From NCBI RefSeq assembly GCF_000315625.1, contig NW_005434400.1, positions 1-36,229 of the forward strand: a DNA stretch of 36,229 bases, written 5' to 3'. Numbering within the stretch: position 1 is the stretch's first letter; each line of letters opens with the position of its first letter. The translations under genes and the position numbers were made by a program. This document shows, one piece after another, positions 985 to 36,229 of this stretch. Origin of the DNA: Guillardia theta CCMP2712 (taxonomy: Eukaryota > Protista > Cryptophyta). Below the pieces are notes generated by a model. It did not search any database. It was given only the letters and a program-made list of their open reading frames with translations, and was not told where the DNA came from.

Positions 985-1532
985 TTATTCACTGGCACGC
1001 CTATCCACCGCTATGTACACGTCAACTTCTCATCGCAACACTTGACATAACCACTTGTTCTCGCCTCTTCAAACAATCTTCGAAGGTCTGCTATCTCCTG
1101 ATCCACTTGGGAGACGCTAGAGTTCCATGAGTGGGTGGTCTTGATCTTGTCTTGTGAGCCCGTTCTGCGGATGGGGAAGGAGGACCCCTGCTTCAACTTG
1201 AACGTGGAGGTCTGCCTCACCGCTAGGGTGGAGGAGATGCGAGTGACATTGCTGGTCTTCTCTGCGTGTCTCGTTGACCGCACTTGCTTTCTCTCCTTTG
1301 CAGGGACCCTCTTTGTGCGCCGGCCACCAAGGGGGTTGAATGAAGCTAGAGAATTGAGAACACCCATGAGTCTTTCATCCCGAAAGGCAGAGTCCCACAC
1401 GTCGACCGTGTCGATGAGGACAGGAGGGCGTTGAGTAGATGTCCTTTCGATGTCCCTATATACAGCTGCGGTGCATCGAGCGCCGCAACCAAAGAAATCA
1501 TCGAAAGCGTCCTTGCAGAGTGGTTGCACCAT
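985..1532 (-). CDS. Hypothetical protein (~170 aa), probably with one short 3' intron (~1011-1051)
   Basis: ORF 1011-1547 with ATG at 1532 (MVQPLCKDAF...). Non-repetitive, ends in a short coiled-coil-like segment (VDQEIADLRRLFEEA). Candidate GT..AG intron gives a stop at 985. No recognisable domain. Confidence 0.4.
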
Positions 1533-3396: not shown

Positions 3397-5733
3397 CTAG
3401 CCATGCCCGTACCTGACCTGCATGTAGGCTACCGCAACGCCGGCAGCGAGCTCGTGCCTTGTGTGTCTGAGCATGCTCGCAAGCGACCCGCTCCTCCCGT
3501 CGTCTGCGTCGCTGGATGCCTAAGGACGCGAGTCATCTAAAGAGAGCGACTTTTTGCATGCGTTGGTGTAGCAGGACGGAAGAGAAGGAGTGAGGGGCGG
3601 AGGGGAGGGAGCCTGAGGAAGGGTGTAGGGAGGGAGGAAGGGAGGGAGCAGAAATTAGGGGGCTCGAGAGGGAGGGAGGAGGGGACATAGGGAGCTGTGC
3701 GTGGAACTTGTGGAGCTGTGAAAGTGTGAAGTTGATAAAAGGAGCAGGAGCATGCGGATAGGCAGCGGGAGTGGGGTACGGGACGCGCCTTGGTGTGTTC
3801 AAGACTCTTGGTAGTGCGGAGGAAGAAGAGTCGCTTGTCGTCGGATTGCAGGTAGGAGATGAGGAGTGAAGCTGCATGGGAGTAGAAGGCAAGAGTCCGG
3901 ATAGCTACCGGGAGGATGAGCGAGGAGACGTTGAAGCAACAAGCACCTGACAGAGAGGCACAGGCAGCGAAGACCTGGCGCAGGAGCTTTCCACGAGTCT
4001 TGTCATGCGAGCTCGAGCTCGAGCTCTCGTGTGCTCGTAAGATGTCGATGCAGCGATCTTGGCTCAGTTTGTAACCTGAGGCAGGAAGTTGAGGAGGAGA
4101 GGAGAAGAACAGAGAGGAGAAGAACAGAGAGGAGAAGAACAGAGAGGAGAAGAACAAAGAGGAGAAGAACAGAGAGGAGAAGAACAGAGAGGAGAAGAAC
4201 AAAGAGGAGAAGAACAGAGAGGAGAAGAACAGAGAGGAGAAGAACAGAGAGGAGAAGAACAGAGAGGAGAAGAACAGAGAGGAGAAGAACAGAGAGGAGA
4301 AGAACAGAGAGGAGAAGAACAGAAGCACTACCTGCCGCTTGCTCCTCCAACGCTGACTTGAGCATCTTGAGCGCCTCCATGTCCTGAAGATACATCCCCA
4401 TCTTTCTCTCGGCTTTCCCTGTAGCAGTGTCCTCGTCCTGATCCTCGTCCTGGTCCTGGTCCTGGTCCTGGTCCTGGTCCTCGTCCTCTTCCCCTTCTGG
4501 TTCTTCATCCCCGAGTTCCTCCATCTCCCATGATGCTTCATCGCTTTGACCTCCCAAATCTTGTCCTGCTCCATCCTCCACCACGTCGAGCTCGTCGCCC
4601 TGTGGCTCGTCGCCGGACAGGATCACTCGGCAGGCGTCCAGCAGACGCGTGAAGGGCTGGTACGTGTAGGAAGCTTGCGGAGCGCATCGGAGAGGAGCGA
4701 AGCGCTTCTGCTCGTCTCCCCATCGCTTCAGCTTTGCCTTGCTGTCAGCAAGCACGCACGACCGGATCTTCGCCCACTCGTCTGGGGGGTACTGCACAAA
4801 CGCGTTCACCGTGTCGTTCATGGACCCATCTGGCTCCACGTTGTCCATCACGCAGAAGCCGTAGTTGAGCAGCAGCTCTCTGCTCCCTTTCGCTCCGTAT
4901 GCGATGTACACCTCCTCCTCCTCCCCTAGGTCCCTCAGTGACGTGAGCACGAAGCCGGCACGTGCCGGGGCCTCTTCGCGTCTGTAGCTGTACGCGGTGT
5001 CTCGGGGCCTCTTGTGGTTGAAGCAGTCGAGGATGGGGACCATGACCTCTCCCAGCTCGTCGGCGTCAAACGAGCGACTTGACACGCATGCAAGCGCCCA
5101 CAAGAACTCTCCCTTGGAGGAGGACATACGACCAGCAGCTTTGAGCTCTTCGTAGTCCTGGTCGGCATTGGACGCCATGGTGGTGGCGGCATCTGCAAGC
5201 TCAGAGGAGCCGAGCAGCTCCTCCCGCTCCTCCCGCGACCACCAGGCCGGGAGTGACGTGAAGAGATCTTGAGGTGGGAGGGTTGAGATGTAGGCGTGAA
5301 AGGCTGAGGACTCTTTGAGGTTCCGATGGTGGAGGAGGGCGAGGGCGAGGGCAACGTCTCCTGCGGTGCGGTCATGATAGGCAGGAGCTACTTTCGCAGT
5401 CTCGCTCGCCTCTATTAAGTTTCAACTTCATTCCCTCGATGTCTTCTTGTCTTCCCAGCAGGAGACAGCATGTCGGGACCTTCACAAGCTCGTGCCCCTG
5501 TCATAGTCTGAGTCAGGCCGCATTAGCAAGGAGGTCGATACCTTGTTGATCTTTGCGCTGCTCGTGAAGACGCCGCAATCCCCACCCTCACCCTCACGGA
5601 GTACGATAGGCCCCACCTCCCCTCCCCTCTCCCTTACCCACAACACGCAGGCATCGAATGCCTCTGACCTGCTCTGAAACCCTCGCACGCATCGCTTCTT
5701 GGGAGTTCTTTCCTCCCCACCATTGGTTGTCAT
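3397..5733 (-). CDS. SET-domain protein-lysine methyltransferase (Rubisco LSMT/SETD3/SETD6-like), multi-exon
   Basis: Exon 1 WVRERGGEVGPIVLREGEGGDCGVFTS; HELVKVP; SAFHAYISTLP..SLPAWWS; FLWALACVSSRSF; MVPILDCFNH; GEEEEVYIAYGAKGSRELLLNYGF. Introns include 4076-4331. Final exon ...AYMQVRYGHG* (stop 3397). 3' exon structure is approximate. Confidence 0.9.
4088..4323. repeat. 15-bp minisatellite (AGAGGAGAAGAACAG)n, ~15-16 copies, inside an intron of the SET gene
   Basis: Near-perfect tandem units lying between a minus-strand GT donor (4331) and AG acceptor (4076). Confidence 0.95.
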
Positions 5734-6167
5734 TGGCCTCCCAAGAGGTTGCTCTGATCACAGCCCACACGTCAAGAAGAAAGTTTACTCCTCCTTCATC
5801 CTCTTTCCCTCATCGGATTTCTCACATCGTTGTGATGAATCTGTACCGATACTTCCCACTCTAGTCTCCCTCCTACTCTCATTGATCATTTTCCTTCCCT
5901 TCCCTTCCCTTCCCACTTCTCCCCTCCCCTCCTTCTCTGCTCTCTTCTCTCTCCGCACCATGCTCTCGTAGCTGTCTTCACCTTCTCACTCATCCTCCCC
6001 TCCTCGCCTCTCCCGTTCCTTCCATGTCGGGCAGAGATTCGCAGAGATCCGCACATGCGGTGGGCATGAGAGGGGATGAAGGCTAAAATAACGGAACAAT
6101 ATTTATGTAACGGTCGATACCAGGGTGACACATGTGAAGACCAACGATGAAAATCGAGGAGAGGAAA

Positions 6168-6310
6168 GAGGAGGAGGAGGAGGAGGAGGAGGAGGAGGAG
6201 GAGGAGGAGGAGGAGGAGGAGAAGGAGGAGGAGGAGGAGGAGAAGGAGGAGGAGGAGGAGGAGAAGGAGGAGGAGGAGGAGGAGGAGGAGGAGGAGTAAG
6301 GAGGAGGAGG
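6168..6310. repeat. (GGA)n microsatellite abutting a 100-N assembly gap (6311-6410)
   Basis: Direct reading. Confidence 0.95.
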
Positions 6311-8342: not shown

Positions 8343-8691
8343 GACGATCATTGAATCTGCTAGTTCGTGTGCTATGGTCCTCACTTTCCCCTTGTAGCTC
8401 ATTGTCGCTTGGTCGGCAGCTGTTCTCGATGGCAAGCTTTCTACCTTAATGCCAGAGAGTCCGTACTTGAACCTGTAGAAGGTCTTTCTTGCTTGTCGGT
8501 CTCTTCGGAAGAGGTCAACTTGTTCAGGATCTCCTCTATGCTTGTGTGATGGGACACCTTCATTGAGCATGAGCTTTATTCATATGATACACGGAGTGCT
8601 GATAACCTACATTCGGTCCCTATATACATCGTTTTCTACATCTGTACACGTCGTCGCCTCTAAGGCGGTTGGAGCTGGCCCCGTCGCCTCC

Positions 8692-8907
8692 TCACAGCTG
8701 CATAGCCACCCCGTCCGCTGACTCGATCGTCCGCTTCTGCTGGATCATGAGGATGCTCGCGCGGAGGCAGGCCAGCTGCTTGGCCTTGGAGACGGTGGGA
8801 GCGTGTCGGTGCTTGTTACTGGGAGAGATGCTGGTGCGGGAGCTAGGCTGGGATGCAGAGGAGGAGAGGGGAGCGACGATGGTCTCGAGGGCAGGTACTT
8901 GCGCCAT
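8692..8907 (-). CDS. Microprotein type A, copy 1 (71 aa, MAQVPALETIV...KAKQLACLRASILMIQQKRTIESADGVAMQL)
   Basis: ATG in gccATGg context. C-terminal motif shared with type B through mostly synonymous codon differences. Confidence 0.75.
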   Translation of the reverse strand: MAQVPALETIVAPLSSSASQPSSRTSISPSNKHRHAPTVSKAKQLACLRASILMIQQKRTIESADGVAMQL

Positions 8908-9445
8908 GGCGTGGTCGGTGGAGGAGGAACGAGAGGGTTGAGTGGAGGGGAGAGAGGGAGCTCTATTTGAGGGCAACGGGCCACGAGACCTGGGGGGGGG
9001 AGGTAACGTGACGTCCGCAAGTCAGGTGGCATCCGGGGACAGGAAGTCACATGTCAAGGTGGTTCAAACAAGCAAGAGGTAACGTGATGTCTGAAAGTCA
9101 GGTGGCATCCGGGGACAGGGCCTTACAGGCTGTTGCAAAACGTTCATCTTTTTTACCACAAGGTAACCTGCAGATGACAGGAGGTAACGCTCTGACCCTT
9201 TCAAGATCTTGCAAAATTTTCAAACGGTGTGTTTGACAATGACTGCTGACTTTCAACCCTCTACAGGTATCGTGATCGTGATATGCCCTGATCCCTCTTC
9301 ATTTTTAGCATCCACCTCTGCCAGCCTTCTTGTTCCCCTGCCGTTCCACCACGAACCTGTTGGATCAGTCTGTCTTCAAGTTCCGATTGAGTGTGTTGCT
9401 CATATCCTTGCTTTTATCTTCTTACTGCTGTTTGAAGAAGTGCCA

Positions 9446-9670
9446 ATGACTCAAGCTCTGCAACTCGACGCTTCCATCTCCTCTCGATCACATCCTCAAA
9501 TCTCCAATTCATTGCCTGTCATCGCTCCTCTCAACTCCAGCCCAGCCCGTCCATCTGCCCCCGCCATCCTGGACAAGGCCAGGCAGCTCGCATGTCTTCG
9601 CGCAAGCATCCTCATGATCCAGCAGAAGCGCGCTGTCTACACTGCCGACGGCGTACCCATGCAGCTATGA
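9446..9670 (+). CDS. Microprotein type B' (74 aa, MTQALQLDAS...KARQLACLRASILMIQQKRAVYTADGVPMQL)
   Basis: Diverged paralog of type B that keeps the MTQAL start and an identical C-terminal half. Confidence 0.75.
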   Translation: MTQALQLDASISSRSHPQISNSLPVIAPLNSSPARPSAPAILDKARQLACLRASILMIQQKRAVYTADGVPMQL

Positions 9671-10181
9671 CAAAACAATCGCGATATTCTTATGTTTATT
9701 GCTTTGGTTGTCGCATGGATGGATTGTGGACATCACAACAAGCGTTGGCATGCTGATAAGCACAAATCACATTCCAATACGATTTTGGTAAGATACAATC
9801 TAGAAAACAGGTTAAAAAAACTGGAGAATAATTCACAGTAACGTAAAACGAATAAATTAGAGACAACACATTAAACAAAAATTGACATTTGTGTGAGGCT
9901 CCAGCGATGGCAATAGCGTGTCTCGCTCTCGCCATCTCATGCATGCGCTACATGCTTGATTCACGCCTCCACCCATAACGGTACAAGGACTGTTTACACA
10001 CTCACGAGCTGTGAGCGCATGTCTAGATGCGATCCTCGCACGCGCACGCGACAGCACATTTGGCTTTACTCTCATCGTCACTAGTATACAAGCTATGCTC
10101 GATCGCGTCCCGTCTCCCTCCAACACGTACAGCATAGCCTACACCTTCCTCCCGCTCACGCAGCGAGACTGTCCGTCCTTG

Positions 10182-10400
10182 TCATAGCTGCATGGGTACA
10201 CCATCGGCAGTGTAGACAGCGCGCTTCTGCTGGATCATGAGGATGCTTGCGCGAAGACATGCGAGCTGCCTGGCCTTGTCCAGGATGGCGGGGGCGGATG
10301 GACGGGCTTGGCTGGAGTTGGCGGGGGAGGGCAGTGGGCGGGAGGAGCGGGAGGCAGGGTGGGGGGCGTAGGCGGTGTCAAGGGAAAGAGCTTGCGTCAT
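10182..10400 (-). CDS. Microprotein type B, copy 1 (72 aa, MTQALSLDTAY...ADGVPMQL)
   Basis: ATG at 10400, conserved family motif. Confidence 0.75.
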   Translation of the reverse strand: MTQALSLDTAYAPHPASRSSRPLPSPANSSQARPSAPAILDKARQLACLRASILMIQQKRAVYTADGVPMQL

Positions 10401-10923
10401 GGATGAAGCAGGGAGGGCGAGGCTAAAGAGCTGACGGATGAAGCTGACAAGGGCTGGCGTCAACCAAGTGCAAACAAGCAACGTGGAGATAGGCGACAAG
10501 ATCTGGAGGAGCGAAGTCGGGGGAGCAACCCAAGAGGTGAGGTACTGGCAGTCAAATGTCGGGAAAGAGCACGAGACGGACAAACCAGGTGTGTAGTAAG
10601 AGGTGTCAGCAAGGCCTGACCTGGGGAGAAAGCGAACTTAAGAGAGTTGTAGATGCTTCGGCTGGTAGGGCTATACCTATGCGTAACGCATCGGTTCGAT
10701 AATGTCATGGTACCACCATGGCACTCTCAACTATGTCTGTCACGATACCGCTGATTGTAAAAGCTTTGTCATATATTCCTGTAAGGCCCTGTCCCCGGAT
10801 GCCACCTGACTTGCGGACCTCACGTTACCTCCCCCCCCCAGGTCTCGTGGCCCGTTGCCCTCAAATAGAGCTCCCTCTCTCCCCTCCACTCAACCCTCTC
10901 GTTCCTCCTCCACCGACCACGCC

Positions 10924-11139
10924 ATGGCGCAAGTACCTGCCCTCGAGACCATCGTCGCTCCCCTCTCCTCCTCTGCATCCCAGCCTAGCTCCTGCACCAG
11001 CATCTCCCCCAGTAACAAGCACAGACACGCTCCCACCGTCTCCAAGGCCAAGCAGCTGGCCTGCCTCCGCGCGAGCATCCTCATGATCCAGCAGAAGCGG
11101 ACGATCGAGTCAGCGGACGGGGTGGCTATGCAGCTGTGA
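10924..11139 (+). CDS. Microprotein type A, copy 2 (71 aa)
   Basis: Near-identical to 8692-8907. Confidence 0.75.
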   Translation: MAQVPALETIVAPLSSSASQPSSCTSISPSNKHRHAPTVSKAKQLACLRASILMIQQKRTIESADGVAMQL

Positions 11140-11902
11140 GGAGGCGACGGGGCCAGCTCCAACCGCCTTAGAGGCGACGACGTGTACAGATGTAGAAAAC
11201 GATGTATATAGGGACCGAATGTAGGTTATCAGCACTCCGTGTATCATATGAATAAAGCTCATGCTCAATGACGTGGGAGTGTGTGAGACAGGAGGAAGCT
11301 TGAGGGAGGAGAGAGGGACATGAGGGGGAGGGGGGAGGGAAGGGGCAGGCGAGGTAATGGGGGTAGGGCGAGACATGCAGGGTCAAGGGCCGTTGTTTTT
11401 GGTCTTGATTCCGGTTGAAAGGAGGCTCATGGTCGACGCAGCATTTAGATTCTCAATTTACCTTGTTTGTATACTCAGTCATGTCTTGATGAGTGCAAAG
11501 CAGCACATCTCAGTGTACCTCGGATATCGAAATTGATTGTCGGATAACTTCCGTCAGATAATGAGCTGGGAACCAGCAGCTGAGAAAGTTACAAAACGAG
11601 CTCAACGACTCAGCAAGGATCCCAACGAAAGTGATGACATATCTCGCTCTCGCCATCTCATGCATGCGCTACATGCTTGATTCACGCCTCCACCCATAAC
11701 GGTACAAGGACTGTTTACACACTCACGAGCTGTGAGCGCATGTCTAGATGCGATCCTCGCACGCGCACGCGACAACACATTTGACTTTACTCTCATCGTC
11801 ACTAGTATACAAGCTATGCTCGATCGCGTCCCGTCTCCCTCCAACACGTACAGCATAGCCTACACCTTCCTCCCGCTCACGCAGCGAGACTGTCCGTCCT
11901 TG

Positions 11903-12121
11903 TCATAGCTGCATGGGTACGCCGTCGGCAGTGTAGACAGCGCGCTTCTGCTGGATCATGAGGATGCTGGCGCGAAGACATGCGAGCTGCCTGGCCTTGT
12001 CCAGGATGGCGGGGGCGGATGGACGGGCTTGGCTGGAGTTGGCGGGGGAGGGAAGTGGGCGGGAGGAGCGGGAGGCAGGGTGGGGGGCGTAGGCGGTGTC
12101 AAGGGAAAGAGCTTGCGTCAT
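11903..12121 (-). CDS. Microprotein type B, copy 2 (72 aa)
   Basis: Near-identical to 10182-10400. Confidence 0.75.
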   Translation of the reverse strand: MTQALSLDTAYAPHPASRSSRPLPSPANSSQARPSAPAILDKARQLACLRASILMIQQKRAVYTADGVPMQL

Positions 12122-12617
12122 GGATGAAGCAGGGAGGGCGAGGCTAAAGAGCTGACGGATGAAGCTGACAAGGGCTGGCGTCAACCAAGTGCAAACAAGC
12201 AACGTGGAGATAGGCGACAAGATCTGGAGGAGCGAAGTCGGGGAAGCGACCAAAGAGGTGAGGTACTGGCAGTCAAATGTCGGGAAAGAGCACGAGACGG
12301 ACAAACCAGGTGTGTAGTAAGAGGTGTCAGCAAGGCCTGACTTGGGGAGATAGCGAACTTAAGAGAGTTGTAGATGCTTCGGCTGGTAGGGCTATACCTA
12401 TGCGTAACGCATCGGTTCGATAATGTCATGTTTCCACCATGGCACCTCAACTATGTCTGTCACGATACCGCTGATTGTAAAAGCTTTGTCATATATTCCT
12501 GTAAGGCCCTGTCCCCGGATGCCACCTGACTTGCGGACCTCACGCCCTTTGCCCTCAAATAGAGCTCCCTCTCTCCCCTCCACTCAACCCTCTCGTTCCT
12601 CCTCCACCGACCACGCC

Positions 12618-12833
12618 ATGGCGCAAGTACCTGCCCTCGAGACCATCGTCGCTCCCCTCTCCTCCTCTGCATCCCAGCCTAGCTCCTGCACCAGCATCTC
12701 CCCCAGTAACAAGCACCGACACGCTCCCACCGTCTCCAAGGCCAAGCAGCTGGCCTGCCTCCGCGCGAGCATCCTCATGATCCAGCAGAAGCGGACGATC
12801 GAGTCAGCGGACGGGGTGGCTATGCAGCTGTGA
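12618..12833 (+). CDS. Microprotein type A, copy 3 (71 aa)
   Basis: Near-identical to the other type A copies. Confidence 0.75.
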   Translation: MAQVPALETIVAPLSSSASQPSSCTSISPSNKHRHAPTVSKAKQLACLRASILMIQQKRTIESADGVAMQL

Positions 12834-13596
12834 GGAGGCGACGGGGCCAGCTCCAACCGCCTTAGAGGCGACGACGCGTACAGATGTAGATAACGATGTA
12901 TATAGGGACCGAATGTAGGTTATCAGCACTCCGTGTATCATATGAATAAAGCTCATGCTCAATGACGTGGGAGTGTGTGAGACAGGAGGAAGCTGAGGGA
13001 GGATAGAGGGACATGAGGGGGAGGGGGAAAGGGAAGGGGCAGGCGAGGTAATGGGGGTAGGGCGAGACCTGCAGGGTCAAGGGCCGTTGTTTTTAGTCTT
13101 GATTCCGGTTGAAAGGAGGCTCATGGTCGACGCAGCATTTAGATTCTCAATTTACCTTGTTTGTATACTCAGTCATGTCTTGATGAGTGCAAAGCAGCAC
13201 ATCTCAGTGTACCTCGGATATCGAAATTGATTGTCGGATAACTTCCGTCAGATAATGAGCTGGGAACCAGCAGCTGAGAAAGTTACAAAACGAGCTCAAC
13301 GACTCAGCAAGGATCCCAACGAAAGTGATGACATATCTCGCTCTCGCCATCTCATGCATGCGGTACATGCTTGATTCACGCCTCCACCCATAACGGTACA
13401 AGGACTGTTTACACACTCACGAGCTGTGAGCGCATGTCTAGATGCGATCCTCGCACGCGCACGCGACAACACATTTGACTTTACTCTCATCGTCACTAGT
13501 ATACAAGCTATGCTCGATCGCGTCCCGTCTCCCTCCAACACGTACAGCATAGCCTACACCTTCCTCCCGCTCACGCAGCGAGACTGTCCGTCCTTG

Positions 13597-13815
13597 TCAT
13601 AGCTGCATGGGTACGCCGTCGGCAGTGTAGACAGCGCGCTTCTGCTGGATCATGAGGATGCTGGCGCGAAGACATACGAGCTGCCTGGCCTTGTCCAGGA
13701 TGGCGGGGGCGGATGGACGGGCTTGGCTGGAGTTGGCGGGGGAGGGAAGTGGGCGGGAGGAGCGGGAGGCAGGGTGGGGGGCGTAGGCGGTGTCAAGGGA
13801 AAGAGCTTGCGTCAT
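13597..13815 (-). CDS. Microprotein type B, copy 3 (72 aa; A->V in motif, QLVCLR)
   Basis: Near-identical to the other type B copies. Confidence 0.75.
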   Translation of the reverse strand: MTQALSLDTAYAPHPASRSSRPLPSPANSSQARPSAPAILDKARQLVCLRASILMIQQKRAVYTADGVPMQL

Positions 13816-14345
13816 GGATGAAGCAGGGAGGGCGAGGCTAAAGAGCTGACGGATGAAGCTGACAAGGGCTGGCGTCAACCAAGTGCAAACAAGCAACGTG
13901 GAGATAGGCGACAAGATCTGGAGGAGCGAAGTCGGGGAAGCGACCAAAGAGGTGAGGTACTGGCAGTCAAATGTCGGGAAAGAGCACGAGACGGACAAAC
14001 CAGGTGTGTAGTAAGAGGTGTCAGCAAGGCCTGACTTGGGGAGATAGCGAACTTAAGAGAGTTGTAGATGCTTCGGCTGGTAGGGCTATACCTATGCGTA
14101 ACGCATCGGTTCGATAATGTCATGTTTCCACCATGGCACCTCAACTATGTCTGTCACGATACCGCTGATTGTAAAAGCTTTGTCATATATTCCTGTAAGG
14201 CCCTGTCCCCGGATGCCACCTGACTTGCGGACCTCACGTTACCTCCTCCCCCCAGGTCTCGTGGCCCAGTGGCCCTTTGCCCTCAAATAGAGCTCCCTCT
14301 CTCCCCTCCACTCAACCCTCTCGTTCCTCCTCCACCGACCACGCC

Positions 14346-14561
14346 ATGGCGCAAGTACCTGCCCTCGAGACCATCGTCGCTCCCCTCTCCTCCTCTGCAT
14401 CCCAGCCTAGCTCCTGCACCAGCATCTCCCCCAGTAACAAGCACCGACACGCTCCCACCGTCTCCAAGGCCAAGCAGCTGGCCTGCCTCCGCGCGAGCAT
14501 CCTCATGATCCAGCAGAAGCGGACGATCGAGTCAGCGGACGGGGTGGCTATGCAGCTGTGA
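14346..14561 (+). CDS. Microprotein type A, copy 4 (71 aa)
   Basis: Near-identical to the other type A copies. Confidence 0.75.
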   Translation: MAQVPALETIVAPLSSSASQPSSCTSISPSNKHRHAPTVSKAKQLACLRASILMIQQKRTIESADGVAMQL

Positions 14562-15002
14562 GGAGGCGACGGGGCCAGCTCCAACCGCCTTAGAGGCGAC
14601 GACGTGTACAGATGTAGATAACGATGTATATAGGGACCGAATGTAGGTTATCAGCACTCCGTGTATCATATGAATAAAGCTCATGCTCAATGACGTGGGA
14701 GTGTGTGAGACAGGAGGAAGCTGAGGGAGGAGAGAGGGACATGAGGGGGAGGGGGAAAGGGAAGGGGCAGGCGAGGTAACTGTGGGAGGACAGGACAGCC
14801 ATATTCATGTTTGGGTGTTTTAATCAAGTATTTTACCGCAGGGATTGAAAGCACGTTACTGCGCATGTGCAACATAATTTTATTTTTTTCGTGTTACTTT
14901 GACTTACGTTTGATGTTAGAGCCTGGCACAGTTCCTTAGCATAAAAACTCGACCCGGCGCGAGCGTCTGAAGGGCATTGAAGGCTAAAACATGAACTGGC
15001 AC

Positions 15003-15175
15003 ATCTTTCATCGCCAATACACTGAAGCTTGAATCTATCATCACTAACACGCTTGAACTTATCTATCATCACTAACACACTGAAGCTTGAATCAACCTAT
15101 CATCACTAACACGCTTGAATCTATCATCACTAACACACTGAAGCTTGAATCTATCATCGCCAATACACTGAAGCT
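15003..15175. repeat. Imperfect ~24-34-bp minisatellite (ATCTATCATCACTAACACACTGAAGCTTGA), ~6 copies
   Basis: Direct reading; units contiguous, no spacers. Confidence 0.85.
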
Positions 15176-28438: not shown

Positions 28439-29344
28439 CTGTCTTGTAGGTTTGCTTTGATTTATAAGTGCTCTGGGTTTTGATTTAAATAGGATAGAGA
28501 GCTTTCTTTTGATTCTTTCATTGCAAGGTTTGATGTTATTGCCTTGTTGATGTGGTTTTGTTCCTCGCTTCTTGTCCTGCTAAGACCATCTAACATGTTC
28601 ACCATTCTCCCATCGCAACTACAAATGTGACTACCTATCAATGATTTTATTTTTGACTGGATGCCTTTTACTCAAGCGCCTAGTGGCTAAGTGACACAAA
28701 CCTTCGGCACCTTTTTGCCGTTTTCAGATGGTTTTGCCTTAGAGGGGCCTGAAAATGAAGGGTGGGGGTAGTCCTACTACGGGTATTCTGAATAGATCAA
28801 AGATAGGGTGAATACTTGCCATTGCTGGGGGGGGGGGGGGTACTGGCCTTCCCGGGAAATGGCGCGCATGATATTTTTGAGTTTCTGTTCAATTTTCACT
28901 GCATTATACTATCTATCTTGATTCAACATCTCAATTGGAAAGAGTTTCTAGAATATGATATGAGCGAAATTGTGTCTTTTTCATTAGGTCTTCTCAGTTT
29001 AAAACCCAACTGTCGCAGTGGAGTACGTTCATTACTTGATTGCAGGTTTGGAGAATGAGTATTCCATCCATCACTGGTATGATCTTTCACGCTGCTCTGG
29101 TCTCCCTCGAGTTAGTAAAGACCTCAACATTTTTGGAATGCTCACTCCGCACTCCTCACATCCTCTTGCCTGCTGCGATATTGCAATGGGTTCTCCTGAT
29201 TCACCTGCCGCGTGTGCATGTCTCTGAGTAATTGTCTTGCTTCTCAGTCGAGATAGGCCTCTTCCACGCTTGAAAATGTTTCAGTGATCATCAACATTTT
29301 GGTGTGAGGTACCCCAATCACTTTCCTTACCATCTCCTTCTAGA

Positions 29345-29406
29345 GTTTAGGGTTTAGGGTTTAGGGTTTAGGGTTTAGGGTTTAGGGTTTAGGGTTTAGG
29401 GTTTAG
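29345..29406 (+). repeat. Interstitial telomeric tract (TTTAGGG)n, ~9 units
   Basis: Direct reading. Confidence 0.98.
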
Positions 29407-30055: not shown

Positions 30056-30082
30056 GCTGAGCTCAAGGTAAGGAGAGAAGGT

Positions 30083-30296
30083 AGGAGGCGACCGAAGGCC
30101 AAGGTGAGGAGAGGCAACTCTCCTGATTGAGGCTGAGGAAGCTGAATGGAGGAGGAGTAGGTGGCGACCGAAGGCCAAGGTGAGGAGAGGCAACTCTCCT
30201 GACTGAGGCTGAGGAAGCTGAAGGGAGGAGGAGTAGGTGGCGACCGAAGGCTCAAGGTGAGGAGAGGCAACTCTCCTGACTGAGGCTGAGGAAGCC
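30083..30296 (+). repeat. 3 x 76-bp tandem repeat in the element 3' UTR, each with an AGGAGAG-GCAA-CTCTCCT hairpin (repeated again at ~34775-34987)
   Basis: GGCGACCGAAGG recurs at 30087, 30163 and 30239. Confidence 0.9.
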
Positions 30297-34276: not shown

Positions 34277-35166
34277 GATCAAGCTGGTCCTGGACAAGGC
34301 TGTTGGCAACCTCCACGACACCTTCTANNNNNNNNNNNNNNNNNNNNNNNNNNNNNNNNNNNNNNNNNNNNNNNNNNNNNNNNNNNNNNNNNNNNNNNNN
34401 NNNNNNNNNNNNNNNNNNNNNNNNNNNNNNNNNNNNNNNNNNNNNNNNNNNNNNNNNNNNNNNNNNNNNNNNNNNNNNNNNNNNNNNNNNNNNNNNNNNN
34501 NNNNNNNNNNNNNNNNNNNNNNNNNNNNNNNNNNNNNNNNNNNNNNNNNNNNNNNNNNNNNNNNNNNNNNNNNNNNNNNNNNNNNNNNNNNNNNNNNNNN
34601 NNNNNNNNNNNNNNNNNNNNNNNNNNNNNNNNNGGACAAGAAGGACCGACTGCGGGTGGAGATGAGGGAGATGATGAGAGAGGAGACATGGAGGAAGAGC
34701 AAGGCGAGGGCGAGGAAGAAGACGGGGCGAGCCCGTACCGAGCTTGAGCTGAGCTCAAGGTAAGGAGAGAAGGTAGGAGGCGACCGAAGGCCAAGGTGAG
34801 GAGAGGCAACTCTCCTGATTGAGGCTGAGGAAGCTGAATGGAGGAGGAGTAGGTGGCGACCGAAGGCCAAGGTGAGGAGAGGCAACTCTCCTGACTGAGG
34901 CTGAGGAAGCTGAAGGGAGGAGGAGTAGGTGGCGACCGAAGGCCAAGGTGAGGAGAGGCAACTCTCCTGACTGAGGCTGAGGAAGCCAAGAGAAGACAGC
35001 AGAAGTAGAAAGTAGAAAGAGACCTCAGAAGCAGGGTTCGCATTGTAGGCCGTGTACTCCCAGTGCTCGCGCGCCTCTTTAGACTAGGATCAAATTGCAA
35101 AAGCCCACAAGGAGCCGAGCAACATTCTAGCATTCTAATAAACTCACATAATAATGATAATAATAA

Positions 35167-35246
35167 TAGGGTTTAGGGTTTAGGGTTTAGGGTTTAGGGT
35201 TTAGGGTTTAGGGTTTAGGGTTTAGGGTTTAGGGTTTAGGGTTTAG
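35167..35246 (+). repeat. Interstitial telomeric tract (TTTAGGG)n, ~11 units
   Basis: Direct reading. Confidence 0.98.
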
Positions 35247-36140: not shown

Positions 36141-36229
36141 TTAGGGTTTAGGGTTTAGGGTTTAGGGTTTAGGGTTTTAGGGTTTAGGGTTTAGGGTTTA
36201 GGGTTTAGGGTTTAGGGTTAGGTTAGGTT
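36141..36229 (+). repeat. Terminal telomeric tract (TTTAGGG)n
   Basis: Runs to the window end with the G-rich strand pointing outward. Confidence 0.98.

Follow-up and report, generated by a model that had tools for sequence, protein, structure and literature searches.

The stretch analysed here (the window) is the entire 36,229-base contig C274 of the 87.1-Mb, 669-contig assembly of the Guillardia theta CCMP2712 genome. It contains an array of eight intact open reading frames (ORFs) that are arranged in four head-to-head pairs (Table 1) and encode small proteins of 71 amino acids (type A), 72 amino acids (type B) and 74 amino acids (type B'). The gap between the partners of a pair is 496-538 bp. 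All eight ORFs have a C-terminal block of approximately 35 amino acids in common, and the motif KA[KR]QLACLRASILMIQQKR....ADGV[AP]MQL-stop is present in each of them, the sole deviation being LVC for LAC in B4. An earlier interpretation made from the DNA alone (the sequence-only reading) had described eight such ORFs with a conserved C-terminus in four divergent pairs, and we recovered exactly the same coordinates and motif. The N-terminus, which had been called variable and Ser/Pro-rich, is indeed so: Ser, Pro, Thr and Ala together make up 50-64% of residues 1-36. The proteins are basic, with isoelectric points (pI) of 9.7 (A) and 10.4 (B). At the very start, all that A and B have in common is M-[AT]-Q-x-x-x-L-[ED]-T-x-x-A-P, which supports the ATG chosen in the sequence-only reading. 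Its statement that a signal peptide is missing agrees with the absence of an uninterrupted hydrophobic h-region from the first 30 residues, as determined by direct reading of the sequence and not with a predictor.

The repeat structure of the array is regular. Including flanks, the A copies have 99-100% identity over stretches of 422-484 nt, and the DNA likeness between A and B is limited to approximately 100 nt with 77-79% identity. The three tandem units differ by 0-2.3% in both coding sequences, in the intergenic region and in the 3' part of the spacer; divergence reaches 5% in the partly alignable 5' part of the spacer located at the right edge of the array. A comparison from unit to unit shows 9-34 gap columns in the intergenic regions and none in either coding sequence. 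Directly to the right of the array is a 30/58-nt tandem repeat (15003-15175), which may mark the array boundary.

Table 1. Features of the array and of related loci. Positions are those of the window unless another locus is given; C numbers are contigs of the assembly.
Feature	Position	Strand	Remarks
A1	8692-8907	-	71 aa, ATG to stop
B1'	9446-9670	+	74 aa, ATG to stop
B2	10182-10400	-	72 aa, ATG to stop
A2	10924-11139	+	71 aa, ATG to stop
B3	11903-12121	-	72 aa, ATG to stop
A3	12618-12833	+	71 aa, ATG to stop
B4	13597-13815	-	72 aa; A-to-V change in conserved LAC
A4	14346-14561	+	71 aa, ATG to stop
Whole array	8560-14800	.	Inverted partial unit, then three tandem units of 1.69-1.73 kb (repeat analysis)
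Divergent intergenic region, pair 1	8908-9445	.	Other pairs matched only by 8908-9043 and 9076-9129
Divergent intergenic region, pair 2	10401-10923	.	Putative bidirectional promoter
Divergent intergenic region, pair 3	12122-12617	.	
Divergent intergenic region, pair 4	13816-14345	.	
Tail-to-tail spacer	11140-11902	.	Second copy 12834-13596 (99%)
Partial spacer copies	9921-10181, 14562-14797, 8560-8691(-)		
GCCTTACAGG, pair 1	9120-9129	+	
GCCTTACAGG, pair 2	10778-10787	-	
GCCTTACAGG, pair 3	12498-12507	-	
GCCTTACAGG, pair 4	14192-14201	-	
TTACTACAC, pair 2	10591-10599	-	
TTACTACAC, pair 3	12312-12320	-	
TTACTACAC, pair 4	14006-14014	-	
TGTCAGC, pair 2	10443(-) and 10604(+)		
GCCTTAGAGG	8657-8666(-), 11165-11174(+), 12859-12868(+), 14587-14596(+)		
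P0005 exon 1	G000:C102:252000-255500, 1280-1324	+	Spliced to 2103(+)
C81 array			Six copies, 2.0-kb spacing
C62, C20, C217, C154 arrays			Seven copies each
C79, C70 arrays			Four copies each
C102, C46, C80, C45, C280, C78, C30			Divergent or convergent pairs
Deposited relatives			GUITHDRAFT_117223, _116959, _116451, _151699/_151700, _149125 to _149128, _113632, _140379, _121231; 'hypothetical protein'
Hanusia phi relative (example)			UniRef A0A7S0HAF9; transcript ORF

The eight ORFs are part of a large family. When protein A was searched against the six-frame translation of the genome, the eight array copies and approximately 40 weaker matches on other contigs were returned. The subsequent search with a 35-column profile of the C-terminal block yielded at least 110 matches at E<=1e-3, located on 42 contigs, and at least 146 at E<=1. 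None of these contains an internal stop, and nearly all end at the same C-terminal Leu or a few residues away from it. Against a profile built from the paralogues the array ORFs score 59-71 bits (E 5e-14 to 1e-17). The block of the family reads [RK]-x-[KR]-Q-L-x-x-L-x-x-[SC]-I-x-[LM]-[IL] ... [IV]-x-x-A-x-G-x-x-x-x-L with the stop codon directly following, to which all eight ORFs conform; the wider consensus is [YF]-G-C-P-S-R-x-K-Q-L-x-A-L-x-x-[SC]-I-x-L-[IL] ... (R-P) ... [IV]-x-[SG]-A-T-G-E-x-[LM]-x-L-stop. In size (approximately 50-130 amino acids) and in having a low-complexity, non-conserved N-terminal part the array ORFs likewise resemble the rest of the family. An upstream ATG in each of the open frames gives a protein of 51-118 amino acids, and this length agrees with that of the deposited gene model in every case that could be checked (78, 104, 106, 112, 66 and 95 amino acids). 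Most family copies are located in tandem or divergent arrays; copies are near-identical within one array, and those of other arrays have 43-54% identity with A over the block. No second conserved gene was found within the 2.0-kb units of another array or on an environmental contig. The eight genes of the array have no gene model, and the family as a whole is annotated only in part.

Relatives were also found in protein databases. A HMMER search of 1.84 billion protein representatives identified 58 clusters at E<=1e-3, 16 of them at E<=1e-10; all 58 have a length of 61-240 amino acids, and the match is C-terminal or nearly so. For 25 of these clusters the source was looked at: the named ones are all G. 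theta models, ORFs from Hanusia phi transcriptomes (from EukProt, MMETSP and UniRef) or MMETSP transcripts, and the unnamed ones are short environmental contigs from ENA or JGI. A word search with an alignment of 29 paralogues gave seven proteins. With A alone, the word-index protein search had no match, the ORFs of the array itself included, and neither did a word-index search with a 136-aa frame (length range 75-238 aa); exact look-ups of A and of GUITHDRAFT_117223 returned no record. IMG/VR contained no relative of the family, and the JGI metagenomes contained none of the A/B type. On a metagenome contig of 2,079 nt (ENA ERZ930071) we observed a protein that is 99% identical to a member of the G. 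theta C81 array, which shows that a very close relative of Guillardia was present in that sample. So far, the family is known only from the Guillardia/Hanusia lineage. Searches of the literature for Guillardia locus tags, tandem arrays and small proteins found no publication on it. The family had been termed unrecognised, which is correct insofar as there is no Pfam, PDB or fold match and no family description; at least 12 paralogues are, on the other hand, deposited under the name 'hypothetical protein GUITHDRAFT_...'.

The substitution pattern shows that the C-terminal block is selected at the protein level. In the last 31 codons, A and B' differ by 10 synonymous codon changes (CTG/CTC, GCC/GCA, TGC/TGT, CTC/CTT, GCG/GCA, CGG/CGC, GCG/GCC, GGG/GGC, GTG/GTA and CTG/CTA) and six amino-acid changes, and thus the count of 10 given in the sequence-only reading was reproduced exactly. 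Between the A and B types, the Nei-Gojobori method gave for 35 codons a rate of synonymous substitution (dS) of 1.0-1.17 and a rate of non-synonymous substitution (dN) of 0.168, with a dN/dS of 0.14-0.17; taking all A-B comparisons of the domain, dN/dS was 0.14-0.19. For the 38-codon C-terminal domain, dN/dS was 0.14-0.28 in seven of nine paralogue comparisons, namely those with a dS that was estimable and not close to zero; protein-level selection had been claimed from the synonymous differences, and these values bear it out. The N-terminal parts of family members evolve fast and nearly neutrally, with values of 0.23-0.97. The domains of B1' and B2 differ by three synonymous and no non-synonymous changes. 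Scans of the window with Rfam models and for tRNAs found no matches, and the conserved block is accordingly no RNA gene.

The fold of the conserved part was predicted with AlphaFold2. In the model of A2, a type A protein (calculated with a family alignment of 69 sequences), residues 1-36 have low confidence and no secondary structure and are predicted to be disordered, followed by a helix (41-56) and a beta-hairpin (60-62/68-70); the predicted local distance difference test score (pLDDT) is 92-95 over the last 30 residues. A second model, of a 103-aa protein that belongs to the other major clade, shows the same C-terminal helix-hairpin, here preceded by helices 24-54 and 59-66. The conserved C-terminal mini-domain of 35-45 residues is thus predicted to consist of an amphipathic helix and a beta-hairpin, with Leu as the very last residue. 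Conserved positions are mostly those of the hydrophobic stripe of the helix, a small residue facing the hairpin and the Gly of the turn. In addition, two polar stretches are conserved, [RK]-x-[KR]-Q where the helix begins and T-G-E within the turn; according to the model, this cluster would be located at one end of the module.

Profile searching with the motif uncovered the family just described, and no match to a known domain. Pfam scans of the eight ORFs, longer frames, 16 domain segments, 10 full-length paralogues and eight long homologues found nothing consistent. Matches below threshold to WH2, DUF1722, DNA_primase_lrg and fungal pheromone were rejected, each being confined to one or two members. 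A profile search of the PDB sequences had no matches at E<=10. With both models, Foldseek found nothing below E=1 in the PDB and VIA-align found no Z>=5 (the best value, 3.6, comes from generic long helices); a module of approximately 30 residues is too small for either program to rule out a resemblance. Foldseek rows for forkhead, LOTUS and arterivirus nucleocapsid are at chance level (E>1, root-mean-square deviation (rmsd) up to 16 A) and were taken as leads only. The ESM Atlas returned unnamed clusters only, which have low recognition value. By sequence, profile and predicted fold, the domain is outside every described family tested.

The N-terminal tails differ between the clades. In one major clade the tail begins with Q-x-x-F-x-x-L and continues with an acidic or Ser-rich tract; we presume that this four-position pattern resembles acidic activation-domain and Atg8-interacting motifs. 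The other major clade, to which A and B belong, has Ser/Pro-rich tails with [FY]-L-R-A-P in several members. Neither Q-x-x-F-x-x-L nor the acidic tract is found in A or B, which have no aromatic residue at their start, and many other family members are acidic, unlike the basic A and B.

Recurring elements were found upstream of the genes. For 30 family genes taken from different arrays, the upstream 400 nt were examined for 8-mers, and TTACTACA was present in seven and CTTACAGG in six of the 30 regions against 0.2 expected; in shuffled upstream sequences the top count for any 8-mer was six. Across 227 kb of family loci, the regions 100-800 nt upstream of a family domain make up 29% of the sequence and hold 76-79% of the distinct occurrences of these two 8-mers. 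In the array, each of the four divergent intergenic regions contains one exact copy of GCCTTACAGG, and three of them contain exact TTACTACAC. These two and TGTCAGC are also present upstream of distantly related arrays. This suggests that the genes might be under common regulation. Amplification and co-regulation had both been proposed before: amplification is confirmed, and co-regulation is plausible given the bidirectional intergenic regions and the recurring upstream motifs. A one-mismatch variant of GCCTTACAGG, GCCTTAGAGG, was seen 26 nt past the stop codon of every A gene. The sequences TTACAG/G and TTACTAC were considered as acceptor and branch point of an intron in the 5' untranslated region (5' UTR) and rejected, as the supposed branch point is downstream of the acceptor in several loci.

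Expression evidence exists for other members of the family. For several G. theta members, an identical ORF is known from transcripts (for example, P0014 corresponds to the C80 copy). In the MMETSP transcript P0005, a first exon of 15 codons is joined to the body of a C102 copy across a GT-AG intron of 778 nt, and this canonical splice indicates real transcription of family members. The first exon is located in antisense orientation inside the partner gene of the C102 divergent pair, and the intron spans the whole shared intergenic region. By symmetry, the partner copy also has such an exon sequence in mirror image. The array genes had been called intronless, and for the coding frame this holds; introns in the 5' UTR are possible, as the relative on the other contig has a spliced alternative 5' exon. 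'Intronless' is therefore no rule for the family.

According to maximum-likelihood analysis of the domain, the A, B and B' sequences group together in a single clade (ultrafast bootstrap 100, Shimodaira-Hasegawa-like approximate likelihood ratio test (SH-aLRT) 99) that has a long stem and to which nothing in the genome or in Hanusia is closely related; the tree was built on few columns and its deeper forks are unresolved. Spacer and intergenic DNA of the array have no match elsewhere in the 87-Mb assembly, which points to local amplification and not to a dispersed element. The comparisons show the order of events. An inverted duplication first placed two copies head to head around one intergenic region. 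These separated into types A and B (dS approximately 1) while purifying selection acted on the domain, and lastly the A/B pair was recently amplified into three tandem units and one inverted partial unit. B1' has a mosaic structure: over the last 142 nt it matches B2-B4 at 97-98% identity, and its 5' half and most of the promoter are strongly diverged and much older or of other origin. This suggests either gene conversion limited to the conserved domain or an exchange of the 5' module. The contig ends with (TTTAGGG)n at 36141-36219, and further interstitial blocks of this repeat are located at 29341-29406 and 35167-35246. Because of the terminal repeat, the array is regarded as subtelomeric, approximately 21 kb from the chromosome end.

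Taken together, we interpret the array ORFs as protein-coding members of a Guillardia/Hanusia family of small proteins, a reading to which we assign an overall probability of approximately 0.6. Its parts differ in strength. That the family is real, coding and under selection is very probable, and it is likely that the eight array copies themselves are expressed and functional. For the mechanism, the C-terminal helix-hairpin would serve as docking or oligomerisation module for a common cellular partner or for other family members, the variable tails would carry short linear motifs as effector or recognition parts, and the many gene copies would be driven by shared upstream elements and co-regulated. 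The docking or oligomerisation mechanism, suggested by the predicted structure, is tentative and possible at best. A more specific version, in which the proteins are co-regulated, fast-diversifying adaptor microproteins, seems unlikely: the constant helix-hairpin would sit on one conserved host machine and each variable tail would recruit a different target. The tail motifs would be, for example, of the LC3-interacting region (LIR)/activation-domain-like type Q-x-x-F-x-x-L, and the function could be conflict-driven (for example, against viruses or selfish elements) or that of lineage-specific adaptors for selective turnover.

Several points weigh against this interpretation. The docking idea has the predicted shape of a 30-residue model and conservation as its only basis. 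For the eight array copies, whose expression is presumed, no gene model, transcript ORF or metagenome relative with the A/B-type motif was found in a 5.8-billion-cluster collection, by exact look-up or in the JGI metagenomes. Between A and B, the N-terminal part has a dN/dS of approximately 0.97, in an alignment that is uncertain. The tandem units are too alike for a test of recent selection, and the upstream motifs could be left over from the common origin of duplicated promoters and not reflect functional constraint.

The missing A/B-type proteins would also be expected if the array were a silent or decaying subtelomeric amplification of a once-functional member, and the clade being private to this locus, the proximity to the telomere and the near-neutral N-terminal part fit this as well. 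We nevertheless consider it improbable, because all eight frames are intact, indels are found in intergenic DNA and none in the coding sequences, the domain of B1' differs from that of B2 by synonymous changes only, and the upstream motifs of the family are retained; that small ORFs are missing from sets of transcript ORFs is, moreover, weak evidence. Spread by transposition, with the ORF belonging to a mobile element or satellite, would account for the high copy number and for arrays being often located on small contigs. It is largely refuted and has very little probability left: the spacer and intergenic DNA is private to the array, copies are clustered locally, and no transposase, terminal repeats or viral relatives were found.

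Other alternatives concern the gene products. The sequence-only reading had proposed that A and B act as heterodimers via the amphipathic helix, and obligate partnership would account for their maintenance in divergent pairs. Within every one of the four units, one A and one B share an intergenic region, the predicted helix has an a/d-like hydrophobic stripe, and a 30-residue module would probably be too small for a stable core of its own. However, most divergent pairs elsewhere (C102, C46, C80, C45, C280) consist of two same-type copies, so that a pair of two types is no family rule, and duplication of whole units is sufficient to explain the pairing; we therefore regard the heterodimer as doubtful. 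Its second proposal, precursors that are cut after KR and release a C-terminal peptide of 12 residues, does not stand and is extremely improbable. KR does precede the stop by 12 residues in A and B, but the dibasic site is confined to the A/B clade and a few others and is replaced elsewhere by QKA, SGR, DKS, EHR or the RP insert; in the confident model (pLDDT >90) the last 12 residues are predicted to form the hairpin packed on the helix; and proteins that, as read from the sequence, carry no signal peptide do not reach the secretory convertases. A minimal winged-helix-like module that binds nucleic acid with a recognition helix and a wing is quite improbable, too. The predicted order in the 103-aa member is helix, helix, helix, hairpin, the weak Foldseek rows include LOTUS and forkhead, and the array proteins are basic (pI 9.7-10.4). 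Yet all such matches have E>1 and poor rmsd, the VIA-align Z values (<=3.6) are driven by long helices, the domain is near neutral in many members with an acidic preceding helix, and the array copies do not have the first two helices.

Some further features of the window were observed. The three (TTTAGGG)n blocks bracket a duplicated segment with 76-nt tandem repeats at 30081-30295 and 34773-34986, which looks like stacked telomere-associated elements. A 15-nt tandem repeat (4097-4323; 15 copies, 98% matches) adjoins a SET-domain-like ORF at 4003-5178(-), and a (GAG)51 tract (6156-6310) adjoins an assembly gap.

G. theta provides the reference cryptophyte genome, and a family with at least 110 copies is a visible fraction of its unexplained gene content. 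Family members have been public since the genome paper, solely as unnamed hypothetical proteins, with no Pfam model and no solved or recognisable fold. The compact helix-hairpin is confidently predicted and could be a new interaction domain. The locus is a clear example of microprotein gene birth, with inverted duplication, divergence, tandem amplification and concerted evolution, and the candidate family-specific promoter elements make co-regulation testable. If the tails are target-specific, the family would be a lineage-specific adaptor system and, should the adaptor function be true, the helix-hairpin a new protein-protein interaction fold; if they are not, it is a tidy taxon-restricted gene family, mainly of use for annotation.

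Among known systems, the WH2 motif (PF02205) resembles the domain in being a short amphipathic helix with an R...L..I pattern, and matches below threshold were obtained (E 0.068 and 0.48). The score of 10.6 bits is, however, below the gathering score of 23.1 bits, only two of 34 scanned members match, the WH2-type LKK[VT] motif is absent from the family alignment, and the helix is predicted to pack on its own hairpin. The closest known proteins are the relatives from G. theta and Hanusia, which have no described function and no family name. They share with the array ORFs the C-terminal domain (profile E 1e-9 to 1e-17), a length of 61-132 amino acids, single-exon coding frames and the arrangement in arrays, but they fall into other clades, with 43-54% identity to A over the 35 residues of the block, and many carry Q-x-x-F-x-x-L, an acidic tract and a two-residue 'RP' insertion before the hairpin, all three of which are missing in A and B. 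In organisation, the array can be compared with histone gene pairs and ampliconic small-protein families, which are multi-copy arrays of small genes kept uniform by recombination. To histones or any other named family it has no relation in sequence or fold, and its range is one small algal lineage. In a comparison from general knowledge, it is nevertheless like them in its divergent pairs, the shared intergenic region and the tandem amplification, as well as in the near-identity inside an array together with deep divergence between arrays.

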